A stretch of 22,836 nt of DNA from Vitrella brassicaformis CCMP3155. Its lineage: Eukaryota; Protista; Chromerida. The stretch covers positions 1 to 22,836 of the forward strand of contig CDMY01000767.1 of assembly GCA_001179505.1 (NCBI GenBank). The letters run 5' to 3'. A program made the translations under genes and the position numbers. The notes beneath the pieces are model-generated. The model was not told where the DNA came from. It made no database searches and worked only from the letters and a program-made list of their open reading frames with translations. Below, one piece after another: positions 1,730 through 22,434 of the stretch; positions within the stretch are counted from its first letter, which is position 1, and every line of letters begins with the position of its first letter.

Positions 1730-2597
1730 ATTCGAGTCCACGTTGAATTGCGATGGACAGACTGTTCAACTGGTGCGTAGACTAAAAAGGTTGAGACAGC
1801 CAGTTGCACTCCAACTGATGAAGTTGTGCGTGGAGCTGTCTCATATCGAAGTCCTGAGTTCGTCCTGCACGATGCCGCCGATACACAGAGTTCGAGACCC
1901 CGGCGAAATGTGGGCCGGGGCGACAGCTCTAGTCCTTTTTCATCTAAGGTCGGATGAATGAAACATCTCTCCGGTGCGGCAGAAACCCGCCAAATTTGCG
2001 TAGTCTTGGTGGATTGTAAGGTCGGCTGGAGTGTGTGGCTGCTTTTCTGGTTTTCCTGCCGTACCCCCGTGCCCTTGAGCCGTCCAGCTATGAAGCGCTG
2101 TTGCTGCTCACAGATGCCACAGAGAGCTCTACGCCATTGTTGGCGGTGCAGCTGCCAAGGGATCCGTAGGAGCTTATTTACTCTGACAGCGACTTGGATC
2201 ACGTGAATGTGAAGTGTATGTGCATGTAAGCGGAAGCTGTGTCTTGTAGGGCCTTGCTGCATCCTTCCGCATCGGTCTTTTCGGAAAAAGACAGATTCTG
2301 CACAGTTTTTAACACACGGATATCGTCGGGAGGCGAACCGGAGCAGGGATTTTCCTTGCTGAGCTTTGCTGAGGATATCTTGCTGAGGATACGGATGTCT
2401 CGGTTCTTGTCTCGGGTCCCTTCCTGGGAGGATTCCGTCGATGGGAATAGACGCCTCGCAGAAGGCAAGGATCGCTTTGGTAGGGGGAACGTTTTCGAGC
2501 TGCCTGCCTGGTCTGATGTTGCAATGAGCGATCTGCTGGAGAATGCACGGTTGGCGGCCTTGTAGTTCACGGCTGGCAACGATTTTGTTCGTGTCGC
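1730..2597 (+). repeat. Repeat family A, tandem copy 1 (left boundary uncertain, may start further upstream)
   Basis: 1746-2597 appears identical by eye to 2898-3749 and is closely similar to 4066-4924. Confidence 0.9.
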
Positions 2598-2897
2598 NNN
2601 NNNNNNNNNNNNNNNNNNNNNNNNNNNNNNNNNNNNNNNNNNNNNNNNNNNNNNNNNNNNNNNNNNNNNNNNNNNNNNNNNNNNNNNNNNNNNNNNNNNN
2701 NNNNNNNNNNNNNNNNNNNNNNNNNNNNNNNNNNNNNNNNNNNNNNNNNNNNNNNNNNNNNNNNNNNNNNNNNNNNNNNNNNNNNNNNNNNNNNNNNNNN
2801 NNNNNNNNNNNNNNNNNNNNNNNNNNNNNNNNNNNNNNNNNNNNNNNNNNNNNNNNNNNNNNNNNNNNNNNNNNNNNNNNNNNNNNNNNNNNNNNNN
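2598..2897. other. Assembly gap (300 N)
   Basis: Run of exactly 300 N. Confidence 0.99.
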
Positions 2898-3765
2898 AAT
2901 TGCGATGGACAGACTGTTCAACTGGTGCGTAGACTAAAAAGGTTGAGACAGCCAGTTGCACTCCAACTGATGAAGTTGTGCGTGGAGCTGTCTCATATCG
3001 AAGTCCTGAGTTCGTCCTGCACGATGCCGCCGATACACAGAGTTCGAGACCCCGGCGAAATGTGGGCCGGGGCGACAGCTCTAGTCCTTTTTCATCTAAG
3101 GTCGGATGAATGAAACATCTCTCCGGTGCGGCAGAAACCCGCCAAATTTGCGTAGTCTTGGTGGATTGTAAGGTCGGCTGGAGTGTGTGGCTGCTTTTCT
3201 GGTTTTCCTGCCGTACCCCCGTGCCCTTGAGCCGTCCAGCTATGAAGCGCTGTTGCTGCTCACAGATGCCACAGAGAGCTCTACGCCATTGTTGGCGGTG
3301 CAGCTGCCAAGGGATCCGTAGGAGCTTATTTACTCTGACAGCGACTTGGATCACGTGAATGTGAAGTGTATGTGCATGTAAGCGGAAGCTGTGTCTTGTA
3401 GGGCCTTGCTGCATCCTTCCGCATCGGTCTTTTCGGAAAAAGACAGATTCTGCACAGTTTTTAACACACGGATATCGTCGGGAGGCGAACCGGAGCAGGG
3501 ATTTTCCTTGCTGAGCTTTGCTGAGGATATCTTGCTGAGGATACGGATGTCTCGGTTCTTGTCTCGGGTCCCTTCCTGGGAGGATTCCGTCGATGGGAAT
3601 AGACGCCTCGCAGAAGGCAAGGATCGCTTTGGTAGGGGGAACGTTTTCGAGCTGCCTGCCTGGTCTGATGTTGCAATGAGCGATCTGCTGGAGAATGCAC
3701 GGTTGGCGGCCTTGTAGTTCACGGCTGGCAACGATTTTGTTCGTGTCGCAACTGACGCCGCCTGG
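2898..3765 (+). repeat. Repeat family A, tandem copy 2 (possibly an assembly duplicate of copy 1)
   Basis: ORF translations at 1958/3110, 2239/3391 and 2309/3461 are identical. Flanked by N gaps on both sides. Confidence 0.85.
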
Positions 3766-4065
3766 NNNNNNNNNNNNNNNNNNNNNNNNNNNNNNNNNNN
3801 NNNNNNNNNNNNNNNNNNNNNNNNNNNNNNNNNNNNNNNNNNNNNNNNNNNNNNNNNNNNNNNNNNNNNNNNNNNNNNNNNNNNNNNNNNNNNNNNNNNN
3901 NNNNNNNNNNNNNNNNNNNNNNNNNNNNNNNNNNNNNNNNNNNNNNNNNNNNNNNNNNNNNNNNNNNNNNNNNNNNNNNNNNNNNNNNNNNNNNNNNNNN
4001 NNNNNNNNNNNNNNNNNNNNNNNNNNNNNNNNNNNNNNNNNNNNNNNNNNNNNNNNNNNNNNNNN
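3766..4065. other. Assembly gap (300 N)
   Basis: Run of exactly 300 N. Confidence 0.99.
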
Positions 4066-6075
4066 ATTCGAGTCCACGTTGAATTGCCATGGACAGACTG
4101 TTCAACTGGTGCGTAGACTAGAAAGGTTGAGACAGCCAGTTGCACTCCAACTGATGAAGTTGTGCGTGGAGCTGTCTCATATCGAAGTCCTGAGTTCGTC
4201 CTGCACGATGCCGCCGATACACAGAAGCACGATGCCGCCGATACACAGAATTCGAGACCCCGGCGAAATGTGGGCCGGGGCGACAGCTCTCGTCCTTTTT
4301 CATCTAAGGTCGGATGAATGAAATATCTCACCGGTGCGGCAGAAACCCGCCAAATTTGCGTAGTCTTGGTGGATTATAAGGTCGGCTGGAGTGTGTGGCT
4401 GCTTTTCTGGTTTTCCTGCCGTACCCCCGTGCCCTTGAGCCGTCCAGGTATGAAGCGCTGTTGCTGCTCACAGATGCCACAGAGAGCTCTACGCCATTGT
4501 TGGCGGTGCAGCTGCCAAGGGATCCGTAGGAGCTTATTTACTCTGACAGCGACTTGGATCACGTGAATGTGAAGTGTATGTGCATGTAAGCGGAAGCTGT
4601 GTCTTGTAGGGCCTTGCTGCATCCTTCCACATCGGTCTCTTCGGAAAAAGACAGATTCTGCACAGTTTTTAACACACGGATATCGTCGGGAGGCGAACCG
4701 GAGCAGGCATTTCCCTTGCTGAGCCTTGCTGAGGATACCTTTCTGAGGATACGGATGTCTCGGTTCTTGTCTCGGGTCTCTTCCTGGCAGGATTCCGTCG
4801 ATGGGAATAGACGCCTCGCAGAAGGCAAGGATCGCTTTGGTAGGGGGGACGTTTTCGAGCTGCCTGCCTGGTCTGATGTTGCAATGAGCGATCTGCTGGA
4901 GAATGCACGGTTGGCGGCCTTGTACAGTCCGGACCGCGTAAGTGGGTCAGTACATAGCTGGCTCACTTACGTGTCTGACCCGCTTATACGTACTACAGGG
5001 CTGACCCAGTTGTTTTCCAGCGACTTTTAGAGTGATTTCTCGCTGTGAATGAATCACAGGAGCCTCTCAGAACACCATTGACTCTTTTTTTCGCGCTCAA
5101 AGTCACTCAAAACGACGAAAAACCGGTCTGTTCTGTCATTCATTCAATCAGTCCTTGAATGGCTGCGAGAGCCCTTGGATGTCTCCGAATGTTTGATTCA
5201 TCGTTGATCTCCACCCCCGCCACGCAAAGTGATGCAGCCTGAGTGATTTTGCAAGGAAATTCGTCGTCAACACGTTCTCTTGGCGTCATCAACGGTGTCT
5301 GATGGGCCATGACGGCACGAAAGGCATGAACAGCAAGCATAACAGGAAGCAAATCACATAAATCATGCCGCCCCGCCGCCTGCAGCAGTGAATGCATCAG
5401 TCGAAATGGCCATCAAATCGCTCTCACGATGAGTGGGTGGGCGGATGGGGTGGGTGGAGGGCGGAGGGCGAAGTGATGCATCATGCATGGAATGACTGAG
5501 GAGGAACATGCTGCATGCTGACCACCCTCTTGTTTGTCACAAATGGGTCTATCGTGCCTCGGAGTGAAACAGCCGCTCTTCCGTTTACATCGTGAGTCAA
5601 CCCCGCCAAGCAAACTCCATCTTTCGTCGCGATCACCGTCCGAATGGTTCATCTCAGAATATGACAATCAAAATGTCTGTATTTCTCCGTTCATTCACGT
5701 TTTCATCGGTCCGCTCTTTCACAAAGGTGTTCTTCATCGTCTTGCGGTCATTTTGAGCCATGAATGGTCGGTTTGGATGGCTGATTTGAGTCTCTTTGGA
5801 AGGTGACCCGGTTATCCGGTCCGTTTTTGACTGTGTACAGAGTGATTCAGCCCAGCTGGCCCACATACGCAACTGACCCGCTTATACGGTGACCCACTTA
5901 CGCGGTCCGGACCGTAGTTCACGGCTGGCCGCGATTTTGTTCGTGTCGCAACTGACGCTGCCTGGATTTCATTTCTCGGCCGATGTCTGTTCATTCATGG
6001 ATGTTCTTATCAATCCACGTGCCGTACACTCGCCGACGCATCCATTGACCCTTTCCTCATGTACAGTCCGGCTGT
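4066..6075 (+). repeat. Repeat family A, diverged tandem copy 3, split by a DNA-transposon insertion at 4925-5914
   Basis: 4066-4924 aligns to copy 1 with substitutions and a 24-bp tandem duplication (4203-4250). Family sequence resumes at 5915 (tagttcacggctggccgcgattttgttcgtgtcgcaactgacg). 5990-6075 matches 15385-15480 in reverse complement. Confidence 0.85.
4925..5914. mobile_element. Non-autonomous Tc1/mariner-type DNA transposon (990 bp, 25-bp TIRs, TA target-site duplication)
   Basis: Left TIR cagtccggaccgcgtaagtgggtca (4925-4949); right TIR tgacccacttacgcggtccggaccg (5890-5914); 1 mismatch. TA lies on both sides (4923-4924 and 5915-5916). The empty site ttgTAgttc is seen in copies 1 and 2. 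No transposase motif recognised inside. Confidence 0.9.
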
Positions 6076-12089: not shown

Positions 12090-12500
12090 ATGAACATTCG
12101 AGACCCCGAAGGAGGGCCGGAGAAGGCACACGACAGCTTCAGTCCTTTTTCACCGGTGCGACAGAAAACCGCCAATTTGCGTAGTCTTGGCGGATACGTT
12201 GTTGACTCTCACCGGTCGACGTCGGCTGGTGTGTGTCTCTGCTCTTCTGGCTTTCTGACGTCCCCCGGTGCTCATGAGCCGTCCAGGTATGAAACTTTGT
12301 TGCTGCTCACAGATGCCACAAAAGCGCCGGGCCATACAAAAGCGCCGGGCCATTGTTGGCGGTGCAGCTGCCAAGGGATCCGTAGGAGCTTGTTTACTGT
12401 GACAGCGAGTCGGATCAATGACGTGTGAATGCGAAGTGTATGTGCACAAAAGCGAAAGCTGTCTTTGCCGCGTCCTCTGCTCGGAAAAAAAAGATTGCAC
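12090..12500 (+). repeat. Repeat family A, diverged partial copy
   Basis: cgagacccc, aaccgccaatttgcgtagtcttgg and gagccgtccaggtatgaa...cagctgccaagggatccgtaggagctt align to ~1890-2300. Carries an 18-bp tandem duplication at 12318-12353. Confidence 0.85.
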
Positions 12501-15379: not shown

Positions 15380-17203
15380 AGACCGCCGCCAGACTGTACG
15401 CAATTAGGATGGGGTCAATAGATGGATGCTCGCCGAGTTAATGGCACGTGGATTGGTAAGAACATCCATATCTGAACAGACAGCGCTCGAGACATGACGT
15501 GCAGGCGGCATCAGTTTAGCAAAAATTGCGGATCAGTCATGAATGACAAGGCCGCCAACCGTGCATTCTCCAGCAGATCGCTTACTGCAGCAGCAGACCA
15601 GGCAGGCAGCCTGAAAGCGCTCTCTAGGGCGATCGTTGCAGCCCTTTCCCAATATTGCCGTCAGCCAGGCGTCTCTTCTCCCCATGGGCGTATACGTAGC
15701 ACTTACAACAGCCCCGGCGGCATCCCCCCAGCGAGAGACCCGAGGCATCCGTATCAGCGGCAAGGCTCAGGCAAGGAAGACCGGATCCGTAGGGTCCGCC
15801 CCCCAGGCAGCATTTGGCACACGGGCCTCATTCCGACGTCAAGGCCCCAGCCTAGCTTCGGACATTCGACACGCAAAGGGAAGCTACAGTCAACAAATAA
15901 ATGCTCCAACCTAAAAGTTCAAACGCGGAAACAAGCGCGGAAGACAAATGCACTTGACGCCCAACACATCGCGTGGCTTAGGAGACATGTGTGGCTTAGC
16001 GTCCGTACAACATTCCACACCGCTCTCTTCGTTTCTATCATGCATATACCTCTACTTCCCCTCTGTTCACTGCCGAAGTCGGCTCATGTGAAAGGCGATG
16101 GATGCAGCGTTTTCTGCACCTCCCGTAAACGGATGCGGTCAGCGCAGGTTGCGTAAGAGTGCTCGCAGCCCGGCCAAGCGTACTACTCGTTCATCGTTGA
16201 TCCACTTGAGGCGCTCAACGAGGTACTTGTGAGCTGTGTGCTCTCGTGTCGTAGCTGCTAACGCCCCTTTTCTTGAAGGGAAGCAAGTCTGGGCTCACAT
16301 GATATATACTGTGACCCTTGGGTATTTATACTTTACTAATCGCCGAATGTTCCGATGTAGGGCCATTGTAGGCAAAGACGCCTAGGTCGGTCGGCATACC
16401 TAAGCAGAGTACCTCTATCTTCCGCTTACAAAGCCCAATCATCGCTCACAAGCCGTGTCTCAGACGTCTCTTCAGTCAGATTGACAAAGGAGCCCGTTCT
16501 TCTTACTCAAGTCCAGCCACTCCATCCAGCCTGCCACAGAAAGGCACACGACATGCAGCACATACACGAATGAATTCGAGGACAGCGAGACGCCGGGATT
16601 TTCGCTGCATATGTATGTCTTATAGGTATGCCCACAAGCAGAAGATGCAACCGTCTCCGCTGCATCTGCCAGAGGGAAGTCATCCTAGATGTGCCACTGT
16701 GGATGGGCTAGTTTAGCATGCAGAAACCTGTGCAACACACTTTGAAGGCGGAGGGACTGTCCAACCATGCACAAACGGTGGCGTCACCTGTCGCGCCAGT
16801 TTGTCATTCTCGTACCTTGTGCAGAATCTGTCTTTTTCCGAACAGACCGATACAGATGGATGCAGCAAGGTCCTACAAGACACAACTTTCGCTTTTGTGC
16901 ACATACACTTCACTTCACATAATCCAAGTCGCTGTCAGAGTAAATAAGGTCCTACGGATCCCTTGGCAGCTGGAACACCATCTGTGAGCAGCAACAGCGC
17001 TTTATACCTGGACGGCTCAACAGCACGGACAGAAAACCAGAAAAGCACGACACACACCAGCCGACTTACTAATCCGCCAAGACTACGCAAATTTGAAGAG
17101 TTTCTGTCACCGGTGAGATGTTTCATTCATCCGACTTCACATGAAAAAGGACTACAGCTGTCGTGTGCATCCCCCGGCCTACCTACCGCCGGGGTTTCGA
17201 ATG
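15380..17203 (-). repeat. Repeat family A, diverged inverted copy with ~1 kb of unrelated sequence in the middle (~15780-16815)
   Basis: 15545-15660 is the reverse complement of ~2500-2570 (aaggccgccaaccgtgcattctccagcagatcgc). 15735-15775 matches ~2385-2430. 16820-17203 is the reverse complement of ~1890-2310. Confidence 0.75.
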
Positions 17204-18117: not shown

Positions 18118-19330
18118 CTAATGTTGCTGAGGTTGCTCCCCTTCTGAGCCGTCGTTCTCGGACACAGCCGCAGTGGGCAGAGGGGCTGCTGGTGCTGGTG
18201 GCTGTGGTGCTGGTGCTGGCGGCTGTGGTGGGGGCACTCCTTGCTGGATGAGTGGCGGTGCAGTAGGATGCGGGTGAGCGAAGTAGCCGTGTGGTGGGTA
18301 GGGGGCTGGTCTTGGTTGTGGCGGTGTCGGCACCGCAGGAGTGGCAGGGAAGGGCGTTGCGGGTGTGGTCGTCTTGCTCGCCGTCTTGAGAGGGAACACC
18401 GACTCGTGAACCGACACATCACGTGACTCAACTACCACCGAACGATCTGGGATGAACACACAGTGCACGTCCTTTGTGTTCTCCTTTCTGCCCAGGTACA
18501 CCCCTTTCTCAGCCTTGAAATCAAATGGATGACGGCGAGGACCCTCAGGTGCCTTGCGCTGGTGGACGTAGGCCAGCGCACCAAACGCATGGATGTCTTT
18601 GTAGTCGGGCTTGACACCACGCAGGGCCTCGATGGGGGTCATCAGACGCTCACGAGACAAGGCAGCATGCGGCATACGGTTCCTCAGGTAGGTCGCCCAC
18701 TTGACGGCGTACGGCCACAGCAAGTCGCGAAACGTCCACAGTCCGCTCTGGTGCAGCAGCTTTCTCGACATGTCCACGATGATGCCTATGGAGCGCTCGA
18801 CGATGCCATTCTGGTGCTGATGGTGGGCGGCGCTGAACTCCTGCTTGATGTTGAGGTCGGCGCACGTTGAGCAGAACAGACGAGAGTGGAACTCGCCTCC
18901 GTTGTCGGTGCGAAGACGGTGGATGCCGTGGCCGTCCGTATTCGGTGCGGAAGAGCTTGAGTGCGCGCGCGACGGTGTCGGCGGTGTGGTCGGACAGCAC
19001 ATAGACGAATGCGGCACGAGGGAAGACGCAGACGAAGAGCATGAAGCAGGTGAACCTCGAGATCAAGTTGCCGATGATGCTGGTCTTGACGGGCTTGATG
19101 TCTGCAGTGACGAGGTCGCCGATGAAGTCGGCCTTGATGGGCTCTCCCTCCTTGGGCACTTCGCGCATCGCGCCGAGTTTGCAGCTGTCGCATGGGGGCA
19201 GGTCGTTGGGCACCTTGACGTTCTCGTTCTCGGGCCATTCGCTCATGCGTGAGAGGGCCTTGGCAGTCGCATGGCTCTTGTTGTGCCAGTAGTTGTAGTT
19301 CTGCTCGGACGAGTCGACGGCCAACACACA
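18118..19330 (-). pseudogene. Copia GAG-pre-integrase plus DDE integrase, frameshifted
   Basis: ORF 18650..19552 carries the HHCC zinc domain and the first Asp; ORF 18118..19017 carries TDNGGEF and VERS. Removing a 4-bp duplication (ccgtccgt, 18932-18939) gives TEYGHGIHRLRTDNGGEF in frame. A premature TAG lies at 18118-18120. Confidence 0.92.
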
Positions 19331-19560
19331 CTGATCAACCCTGACAGCAACAGACTCACACACACTGGTTAGCCCTGGGGCATCACCCGTGTTTGTGTGT
19401 CTGTCTATCGCCACCTGCCCGTCATTCTGACCTGAATGTGGGCCGGGGCGAGCACATGGTGCTGCTTTGAAGGGGGCCCCGGACCCCATGCTATGTTGTT
19501 CGGGGCTCAATCGTCCACCACCATTCTCCATCCGTCCCGTGTGCATGGCCATGTCCCCAC
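19331..19560 (-). other. Putative spliceosomal intron (230 bp, phase 0) in Copia pol between protease and pre-integrase
   Basis: Donor gtgggg at 19560 directly after codon CAC; ggctaac branch-like motif ~40 nt before the acceptor gatcag at 19331. Splicing gives KLHFIDFVH|CVLAVDSSEQNYNYWH; read-through hits a TGA. Confidence 0.6.
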
Positions 19561-19587
19561 GTGCACAAAATCGATGAAGTGCAGCTT

Positions 19588-19979
19588 CTGATGAGGCTGT
19601 AGTTGGTTGTCTTGTGCTTTGCTTAGACCATACGGTGGGTATGGTCTAGATCAATACAGGTCGACTCAAGCGTGGGGACTCGAGAGCGATTGAATGAATG
19701 AACGTCAGTCGTGAAAGTCCTCTGCGCAGTGCCGGTCATGCAGCGAGCTCAACCAATGGGCGCTGTGAGCGTTGACAAGGCAGGAAACTGCCGCTGCCAA
19801 ACTCGCAGACGACCGGCAAAAGCAAACACCACGTCTGAGGACATCGCATGCACAGCCAGGCAGACACACAGACAGTGTGGTGTGTGTGGTTGGTGTGTCT
19901 GTCTGCCTGTCCTTCTGTCTGTCTTGATACGCACCAGAGAGTGATTTCAAAAGTGCACCCGAACGAAAAGCGACACGAC
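19588..19979. mobile_element. 392-bp insertion in Copia pol flanked by a 10-bp target-site duplication
   Basis: agtgcagctt occurs at 19578-19587 and 19980-19989. Removing the insert plus one copy (402 bp) restores RCGKLH-FIDFVH in frame. Confidence 0.8.
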
Positions 19980-20439
19980 AGTGCAGCTTGCCGCACCTCG
20001 AGAGGGGAATGCTCACACCGGTGCTCTCGTGGATGAAGTGCGAGGCGACTTGGTGGCTCAGGTAGACACCGTATCCATGCAGGTTGATGTCGTCAGTCGC
20101 AAACACGTTGTACTTGAGGTCGAGCACGACAGCGATGTTGCCGATCGTTAGAGTGACGGGGCCAGATGTGCTCTGCATGGTGAGGGGGAGGGTGCCGACG
20201 GCCTTGATGGGCATGAGATCGTTGGATGCTGTCCTGATTATTTCGGGCACGGCTAGGGGCGAGATGTTGACCAGGTGTTTGCCGTCCCTCACGGCGCTAT
20301 TGGTGGCGGCGCAGTCGACGAGCATGCTGCTCTGCAGGTCGATGGAGTAGAGCTCAGATACGATGGGCTGAACGGTGATGACGCGCTGAGTGATGAGGCA
20401 CCACGAGTCACGGTCGATGTGGTGCTGCTCCACAGTCAC
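19980..20439 (-). pseudogene. Copia aspartic protease region of pol
   Basis: MLVDCAATNSAVRD...GTLPLTMQSTSGPVTLTIGNIAVVLDLKYNVFATDDINLHGYGVYL...PLSRCGKLH follows the Copia protease layout (DSGAT..H, G.G.V.L, NVLYVP.L..NL.SV). Confidence 0.8.
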
Positions 20440-20473
20440 TGGCTGTGCCGTCCCTCCGTTGCCGCGGTTGCCC

Positions 20474-21573
20474 CTATCGTTGCGTTGTCATCTGGCGGCC
20501 GTTGCGTGCGCTGCGGTTGTTGATGTCCCTGTCTTTTCTCGGCTCCCACATCAGCGCCCTGCTGTCGCCGTTGCGCAGCTTGTTGATGCGGTCGTCGCAG
20601 TAACGCCATCCACCCCAATGCGTCTTGTGGCAGAAATCGCAGTCCACCATGCCGATGCGCCTCATCCGCTGCTCGTCCAGATGCCCGTGAGGCAGGGGCT
20701 GGTGGTGCTGTGAGAGGATGTGTGGGTAGGAAGTGTAGGAGGGATGGAGCTGATGGTGCATGGGCATGTGCTGGGGTGGGCTGCTCTACATATGTGGTGC
20801 CATGAGAGGCATGGGTGGCTGCACGGGATAGCTGCCCTGTGGCGGGAAGAGTGGAGGGGCGGGCGGTTGGGTGTTCTGCATCATGGCCATGATGTCTTGC
20901 TGTGGGCTCGTCGATGTGGTCGACTGGCGGAGGTGGGTGGCTCCCCACTTGCGCAGGCGGTCCTTGATGGCGTCCAGCCCCAAGTTGTCGCTGAGTATGT
21001 TCTCCTTCAGGATACTAAGGCTCGTCTCGGTGGTGGGGATGGAATCAGTCAGGTAGGCCTGCTGATCCAGCTGTGAGAGCTCCTTGCCCATGCACACACG
21101 ATACTGATTCACCAGGCTCTCGAAGCGCAGGATCTCCGTCTCCGGCTCGAGGGTCTGCCAGGCGAATGAGCGGAGCTGCTGAGCCAGCATCGTGCCCATC
21201 TGGTTCTTGTTGCGCAGGTAGCACTTGCGAAGATGCCACCACGCGTAGGCGCCATTGCCCTCCTCCATGTCGCCCATCTGCTGCAGGTAACTGGCCGCTC
21301 TTCCTTTGCAGACGCCCACGAGGATACGCCACAGTCCCTGTGCGGCCTTCCATTTGTTCTTCGTCGCCTCAGTCGCATCAGTTGCTGTCGCATTCGCTTG
21401 GCAGCCTCCTCAGCATCCCCTCATTGCTCGGGCATCACTCCTTGCTCAGCATAGGAAAAGAGCAGCCGCCTGACCTTCCAGTTCCAGTTCAGATACGCGT
21501 GAGAGTCGCCATTTAGCTCGGGAATCGTGAGACGCTGGTCGTCGATGGTGATCTCAAAGCCTCGGCCGGCCAT
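20474..21573 (-). pseudogene. gag: Copia gag, disrupted
   Basis: Stop and frameshift near 21420; in-frame TAG at 20786-20788 followed by same-frame continuation (20767-20474) containing the zinc knuckle; frameshift before the protease near 20490. Confidence 0.85.
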
Positions 21574-22434
21574 AGCCTCAGTGCAGAATCAATAAAGGAA
21601 AGTCTATACAAGCAGAAGTAGCCTTGCTTCAGCAGAGAAACCTTCTTGCTGCGCCCATGTTGAAGTTGCTGTGTGCCGAACACATACCGTGGTCAGAAGG
21701 ATCAATCTCTGCCGTACAAGCCTTCACACAAGGCACGCAACGCACGAGTCCATCATGGGCGTGGCCAGCCCGCCAAGCAACACACGCACGAGAGCTGCCA
21801 ACGCTCACCAAAGAAGCACGAAATAGTGAGACAGAGAGAGAGCGGTTTCACGGAATGTCCTAAGCGGCTTGACGGCCAAGTCCCATGTCTTTCACGCACA
21901 ATCAAACGAACGAGAGGCAACAGGAATCACCCACGCACGCTCCACATGCACAGAGGAACCCAAGGAACACACTCACGAGGCCTCCAGACCGAAACCCACG
22001 GCCGTCCGCTGAATACGATCTGGCCGAGTCGCTCCTGAGATGTGCCACCCCGGGCCTCCCCCACGCCGCAGAGCCGTCCGCCCTCGGCGCCGGAACCTCC
22101 ATCCGCTATATACGGGTCAGTTGCAGGATGGAAACCCCTCGACTCCGCTCGAAAGACGACTCCGTTCGGGTGCGCGTCGTCGGCGGATCCCTGCCGCGCC
22201 TCGACTCGAGGACGAACAGGAAGAAGTGACATCGTCACTTCATCGCCAAGTAGCGTGGATCCTTCAGCGTCAATAGTGAGACAGGTCTGCAAGCTAAGCG
22301 TGCACAACCCTGCTGGGGGCGCGCGCGTGCGCGACGTTGTGTGCCTGCCTTGATGTTCGCAGCGCATTGCATATCCTCCTGTTTGCATGTGTGCATCGTC
22401 CGAATGAATCCCTTGTGTGTTCATGAGGACGCTC

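Follow-up and report, generated by a model that had tools for sequence, protein, structure and literature searches.

A frameshifted protease-integrase linker with an intron-like cassette in a decayed Copia element of Vitrella brassicaformis

Splicing that yields a separate message for structural proteins has been described in Copia elements of plants and Drosophila. In barley BARE1, an intron of 104 nt directly downstream of gag is spliced alternatively, and a stop follows Gag by three residues (Chang et al. 2013, PMC3735527). In the Arabidopsis element EVD (Ty1/Copia), splicing around the protease gives shGAG, a subgenomic Gag mRNA whose frame is shifted to a new stop, a scheme generalised there to Ty1/Copia elements of Arabidopsis (Oberlin et al. 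2017, PMC5580714); the EVD introns are ~300 nt long, and splicing them out deletes the protease and is coupled to premature polyadenylation (PMC5580714). For Drosophila copia, a 2-kb spliced RNA with an intron of ~3 kb covering pol is on record (Yoshioka et al. 1990, as cited in PMC5580714).

Here we compare these systems with a Ty1/Copia element on the minus strand of a 22,836-nt stretch of the Vitrella brassicaformis CCMP3155 genome (contig CDMY01000767.1, positions 1 to 22,836; hereafter, the window). A first-pass annotation of the window had proposed two frame-restoring phase-0 GT-AG introns in pol of this element, one of 392 nt and one of 230 nt, the latter between protease and integrase. 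Taken as a whole, the 230-nt segment is very probably a frameshifted coding linker in a decayed copy, in which a cassette resembling an intron is embedded.

The window element and its 392-nt insertion

The window copy is decayed and truncated. Its gag-like ORFs lie near 21300-20500 on the minus strand and are followed on the same strand by the protease part of the polyprotein (19982..20439), which ends in RCGKLH and matches the Pol beta-barrel domain (PF22936 Pol_BBD; E 2.2e-6, residues 40-123). Beyond the protease-integrase linker (19331..19560), the N-terminal part of the integrase (18941..19330) was recognized from its translation, i.e., the HHCC zinc finger WHNKSH...CDSC, and from a weak, sub-threshold match to PF13976. 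The integrase catalytic core, an SH3-like domain and a proline-rich tail occupy 18121..18935, where Pfam returned a weak rve match and PF25597 SH3_retrovirus at E 8.8e-14. The domain order on the minus strand, from Pol_BBD through rve to SH3_retrovirus, is that of Ty1/Copia. The first residues ahead of the reverse transcriptase are encoded at 17370-17180; RVT_2 itself is absent from the window, the copy being truncated near 17180.

The genome (72.7 Mb, 1064 contigs) was searched at the DNA level for sibling copies, and same-family copies were detected on contigs C962, C36 and C42. The two copies on C36 are partial; they are separated by a scaffold gap, and both end at scaffold gaps. The gag-protease stretch of the window (21831-19980) has ~94% DNA identity with C962. 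In the C42 copy (L069), sequence resembling the 5' end of the window element (C42:33-208, corresponding to window 21658-21833) recurs ~1.5 kb after the start of the reverse transcriptase, which is suggestive of an LTR and of a non-autonomous copy with an internal deletion. A 166-nt stretch of the window (17551-17386) that starts GTCAGT and ends GTAG is present in C42 and, at least partly, in C962. Elsewhere in the window, three copies of tandem repeats of ~1152-1208 bp (1746-4587) have 98-100% identity and are broken by scaffold gaps; a piece related to them (95 nt) is found at 12349-12443, and similar sequence borders the truncated Copia end near 17000-17130.

The first of the two proposed introns is an insertion. 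As the first-pass annotation had read, RCGKLH is encoded at 19998-19981 (AGG TGC GGC AAG CTG CAC) and FIDFVH at 19578-19561 (TTC ATC GAT TTT GTG CAC), and a 392-nt insert does lie between them (19588..19979, minus strand). Excising 392 nt, however, leaves a frameshift at the RCGKLH/FIDFVH join; a clean join needs the loss of 402 nt, i.e., the insert (19979-19588) together with one copy of the 10-nt duplication AAGCTGCACT that flanks it (19989-19980 and 19587-19578). More than 20 copies of the repeat are found on other contigs at 78-95% identity, with a shared 3' end (...CATCAG) and a 5' extent that varies between 67 nt and at least 1.7 kb. The insert is absent from the siblings, and C962 and C36 match across the site with a 10-nt overlap. 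The 392-nt piece is a transposable-element insertion belonging to a dispersed repeat, and the common 3' end with variable 5' extent is the pattern of 5'-truncated retroelement copies. Three other copies of the repeat have AAGCTGCACTCC directly after their 3' end, 10-12 nt of which are the same as the duplication here, and insertion by microhomology rather than with a true target duplication is possible. Long copies of the repeat have an upstream ORF with a YVDD-like motif; a Pfam search with the ORF upstream of the repeat in one long copy (L012) gave no match.

A protease-integrase linker with a private frameshift

At the second site the sequence features reported by the first-pass annotation are all present. 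GTGGGG lies at 19560-19555 and is followed, 17 codons on, by a TGA in the protease frame (19509-19507); CTAAC is at 19372-19368 with a T/G-rich stretch after it; a CAG ends at 19331 and precedes TGT GTG TTG GCC (CVLAVDSSEQNYNYWHNKSH); a nearer AG is found at 19342-19341; and the segment ends show neither a target duplication nor a terminal inverted repeat. On the strength of these features, the segment had been read as a constitutive phase-0 intron running from GTGGGG at 19560 to the CAG at 19331 (230 nt, or 234 in the siblings). Under that reading, splicing results in the canonical short spacing of Copia proteins, and a 4-bp difference among copies is neutral intron variation. The GT and AG termini, a CTAAC lying 38 nt ahead of the acceptor, and the T/G-rich tract all speak for it.

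Comparison across genomic copies, a check that the annotation itself had proposed, shows a frame break that only the window copy has, i.e., the compensating frameshift that it had named as telling against an intron. The linker segment is kept at ~96% identity in all siblings covering the site, once whole in C962, the only sibling to span it entirely, and twice in part in C36. At the proposed donor the window reads GTGGGGACATGG, where C962 and both C36 copies read GTGGGGACGGACATGG; the three siblings thus carry GGACGGAC where the window has GGAC. In the siblings the segment comprises 234 nt, or 78 codons, in frame and stop-free, with one of the six frames open over this length. In C962, a 600-aa ORF continues without interruption from the protease across the segment to the integrase, the public model for this copy (CEM37894.1) reads through the segment as well, and the C36 copies, over the part that they cover, are both in frame. 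In the window, the N-terminal part of the integrase is in frame with the linker as far as the site of the 4-bp deletion (19551..19557, minus strand). Loss of one GGACGGAC unit there puts the linker out of frame, and removing 230 nt (234 minus 4) merely cancels the deletion.

A pairwise alignment of the window with C962 over 19587-18558 (1026 aligned bases) contains only two indels. The 4-bp deletion at ~19555 is exactly balanced by a 4-bp ACGG insertion at ~18939 (18936..18942, minus strand), 617 nt away, where two window ORFs in different frames overlap (18650-19552 and 18118-19017). Both indels are ORF-breaking slips at 4-nt repeats. Since each gains or loses a single unit of a tandem 4-nt repeat (GGAC and ACGG), with a net change of zero, and the scaffold has gaps and collapsed repeats, both could be assembly or sequencing errors in a copy whose real frame is intact. 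We regard this as improbable, given that the same copy is decayed regardless, with its independent 392-nt repeat insertion, many indels in gag and truncation.

The lesions have left their mark on the public annotation. Model CEM32857.1 (571 aa, window 18121-20665) has predicted introns at 20548-20473, 19995-19341 and 19057-18961, and the second and third of these cover lesions of the window copy. The model calls for caution, as it bridges at least two lesions with artificial introns. In this it resembles other models of frameshifted pseudogenes; it differs in that one of the stretches it skips holds a plausible real short intron, described below.

The ability of the 230-nt segment to restore the frame is not special. 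As many as 25 different GT-AG pairs do so equally well without a stop, because the open integrase frame reaches back to 19618 and shares a stretch with the open protease frame. Nor does the chance argument for two independent frame-restoring introns hold, since one is the insertion and the other cancels the deletion. The proposed donor, GTGGGG, differs at +4 from four of five reference donors. A profile check with PF13976, in which the exons were searched apart, gave only sub-threshold matches (E 0.05-0.18); these begin just after 19330, which fits an exon boundary, but they do so in exon-only and read-through pieces alike and are non-discriminating.

Long protease-integrase linkers are normal in Vitrella Copia elements. 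In those Vitrella Copia ORFs that are uninterrupted, Pol_BBD and rve are 130, 158, 158 or 213 aa apart (end to start), and the G.LY motif and the HHCC finger ~50, 75, 75 or 125 aa. Read-through of the window family gives 182 and 100 aa, respectively, whereas the proposed splice gives 104 and 22 aa, both shorter than in any of the uninterrupted ORFs sampled. The spliced spacing, put forward as short and typical of Copia, is therefore not typical of Copia in this genome.

Protein homology also extends across the proposed 3' junction. A second Vitrella Copia family (hereafter, famB) shares 50 linker residues with the window family, inside ORFs of 871-879 aa, and the last four codons of the segment, RVDQ, align with famB RVEQ across the junction. 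Residues encoded by the segment are thus present in homologous proteins, where an intron would have them absent.

Base composition points both ways. In the C962 ORF, codons 208-276 have a GC3 of 0.52, compared with 0.83-0.84 for the flanking protease and integrase (p = 1.5e-9). Such a low value is unusual for coding sequence and, taken alone, would also fit an intron; the island does end at the proposed acceptor, but it starts ~10 codons inside the proposed donor. With a stop-free frame in every sibling covering the site, homology across the 3' junction and famB transcripts that keep the corresponding block or lose only 91 nt of it (see below), a constitutive intron has very little probability left. 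As delimited, positions 19560-19331 do not form an intron; they encode the polyprotein's protease-integrase linker. The 230-bp reading is an artefact of a broken copy and is not countable as evidence for constitutive introns in Copia pol.

Alternative splicing of a 91-nt intron in a second Copia family

The famB family has the block it shares with the window family in another place, between the gag zinc knuckle and the protease, within the open frames of 871-879 aa and again as a low-GC3 island. The protein collection contains four famB transcript ORFs from MMETSP (the marine transcriptome project). Two of them, P0003 (867 aa) and P0005 (870 aa), retain the block; the other two, P0006 (398 aa) and P0008 (401 aa), end in ...ARPGPHSG-VRQC and a stop. 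In the famB genomic sequence, VRQC and the stop are encoded directly after the junction GGTCAATAG/GTGTGCGTCAATGTTGA, 91 nt downstream of CATTCAG/GTCAGAATG. These transcript-derived ORFs delimit a 91-nt GT-AG intron, CAG/GTCAGA...AATAG/GT, on the minus strand at L062 5550-5460 (C817:11459-11549), which is also present twice on C359.

Retained and spliced forms were both seen in each of two famB subfamilies, and we conclude, from protein ends rather than cDNA, that the 91-nt intron is alternatively spliced. Its retention allows in-frame read-through into Gag-Pol; its removal shifts the frame and brings a stop after four codons, leaving a Gag-only message. Two further features of famB were recorded. 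Its protease-integrase linker (L062:4745-5077) is a second low-GC3 island of ~100 codons, in frame and retained in the transcript ORFs. P0003 and P0005 leave the genomic integrase frame after ...KPKELR via an apparent 1-nt shift, and the expressed famB copies, or their assembly, are therefore defective in integrase.

The famB arrangement (91 nt, CAG/GT...AG/G, stop after four codons) matches BARE1 point for point. In both, gag and pol form one ORF, and a short GT-AG intron inside it gives read-through when retained and Gag only when spliced; BARE1 resides in a plant and famB in an alveolate alga. EVD differs in that its intron of ~300 nt removes the protease, compared with 91-101 nt here. Drosophila copia, as far as its description in PMC5580714 goes, is alike in that a spliced subgenomic mRNA alters the ratio of structural to enzymatic products, and differs in having an intron of ~3 kb spanning pol rather than a frame-shifting one of 91-101 nt. 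As its transcript-derived proteins show, the chromerid family famB uses the same device as BARE1 and EVD, keeping the intron to make Pol and splicing it out to make only Gag.

A shared block and a candidate 101-nt intron in the window family

The window family and famB are otherwise only ~26% identical in protein, and a single 114-nt core (19394..19507, minus strand) is their only substantial DNA match. Over this core, the window sequence (19507-19394) has 87-89% identity with famB (C817 and C359), in the same reading frame in both families. The core consists of 76 nt of upstream coding sequence and the first 38 nt of a candidate alternative intron of 101 nt (19331..19431, minus strand), which was recognized by its donor context, length and T/G-rich tract. 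The candidate donor is CAG/GTCAGA, with the GT at 19431-19430 and GTCAGAATGACGGGCAGGTGGCG following the CAG, and is identical to that of famB. As candidate acceptors there are the CAG at 19331 and an alternative AG at 19342-19341.

In a MAFFT alignment the famB acceptor falls on the CAG at 19331, the acceptor of the first-pass annotation. The 3' half of the candidate intron is weakly similar to famB (62 of 2000 shuffles reach this similarity, p ~0.03), so the suggested homology of the acceptors is tentative. On the minus strand, window positions 19324-19377 contain an internal duplication with a spacing of 34 nt (CAGGGCTAACCAGTGTGTGT and CAGGGTTGATCAGTGTGTGT), which explains the extra length of the candidate intron and its several AGs; the CTAAC motif is accordingly a paralogue of the acceptor region. 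Of the intron first proposed here, the acceptor and the T/G-rich tract survive as parts of the 101-nt intron-like stretch, and the donor, the length and the phase do not. If there is an intron at this locus, it may be one with another donor, length and phase, shifting the frame rather than restoring it.

Three host introns in tubulin-family genes (L070, L075 and L076; contigs C553, C113 and C256) served as a control. They were delimited by conserved protein sequence, each GT-AG pair being tested by translation across the junction; tubulins were used because the relatives of the window gene itself, at only ~48% identity, are unfit for exact exon mapping. The tubulin introns are 78-127 nt long, with the donors GTAAGC, GTAGGT and CAG/GTCAGA. 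They have an excess of G over C, are not pyrimidine-rich and carry a (T/G)n tract before the AG. The 101-nt candidate matches them in length, donor, T/G-rich tract and G excess, and the GTGGGG donor fits less well. GC content was rejected as an intron marker, as tubulin introns (GC 0.42-0.61) overlap with exons; the G-over-C skew and GC3 are more telling.

Other accounts of the shared block were tried and set aside. As a dispersed repeat or introner, the segment has only seven genomic matches, all inside the two Copia families (a weak C356 match lies in low-complexity host sequence). A more general mobile island finds no backing in the second low-GC3 island of famB, which is confined to that family. 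A dN/dS comparison of the block showed mostly non-synonymous differences between the families and no sign of purifying selection on the peptide; within either family the copies are too similar to be tested in this way.

The strongest competing account is that the linker is plain coding sequence with nothing spliced in the window family, the shared block being an inert relic of recombination between co-packaged RNAs of two Copia families and the 4-bp deletion simple decay. We give it a little less than an even chance. It accommodates the continuous ORF of C962 and the outcome of our search of the protein collection, which yielded no window-family transcript ORF, spliced or unspliced, short ones included. 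The position of the block also agrees with it. BARE1- and EVD-type introns lie just after gag or around the protease, and the window cassette lies after the protease and ahead of the HHCC finger. Splicing 19431-19331 would shift the frame without a prompt stop, giving an out-of-frame nonsense tail of 66 codons in C962, still ending before the integrase core, and 181 in the window, versus four in famB. The poor conservation of the 3' half of the candidate intron relative to famB fits an inert relic as well. Such a relic does not account for a donor that, with the 38 nt downstream of it, is almost unchanged between the families, for the agreement of donor, length and T/G-rich tract with working host introns, or for a compositional island that ends at the aligned acceptor in both families. 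EVD-type introns resemble the 114-nt core in that conservation is highest at the donor. The BARE1- and EVD-type retained form, in frame and stop-free within a single ORF, is found in both the C962 ORF and the 879-aa famB frame.

That the candidate intron is spliced in the window family is a reasonable conjecture, to which we would give somewhat less than even chances. Intact copies, with a donor at 19431 and an acceptor at 19331 or 19341, may then work like famB. With the cassette after the protease, the predicted spliced product would be Gag-protease with an out-of-frame nonsense tail, unlike the Gag-only product of BARE1. More speculative, and on balance unlikely, is the idea that a retained-intron cassette of ~190 nt has moved between two distant Copia families into different places of the polyprotein. 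Such a cassette would be made up of a short coding lead, a U1-type donor, an open-frame intron of 91-101 nt and an acceptor.

The famB family extends to an alveolate alga a strategy described in plants and Drosophila. That a donor-bearing block is common to two otherwise unrelated families hints that splicing modules are exchangeable. If the movement of the cassette were true, the cassette that makes a Gag-only message in famB would make a Gag-protease message in the window family, and what balances structural against enzymatic proteins would itself be a portable module.
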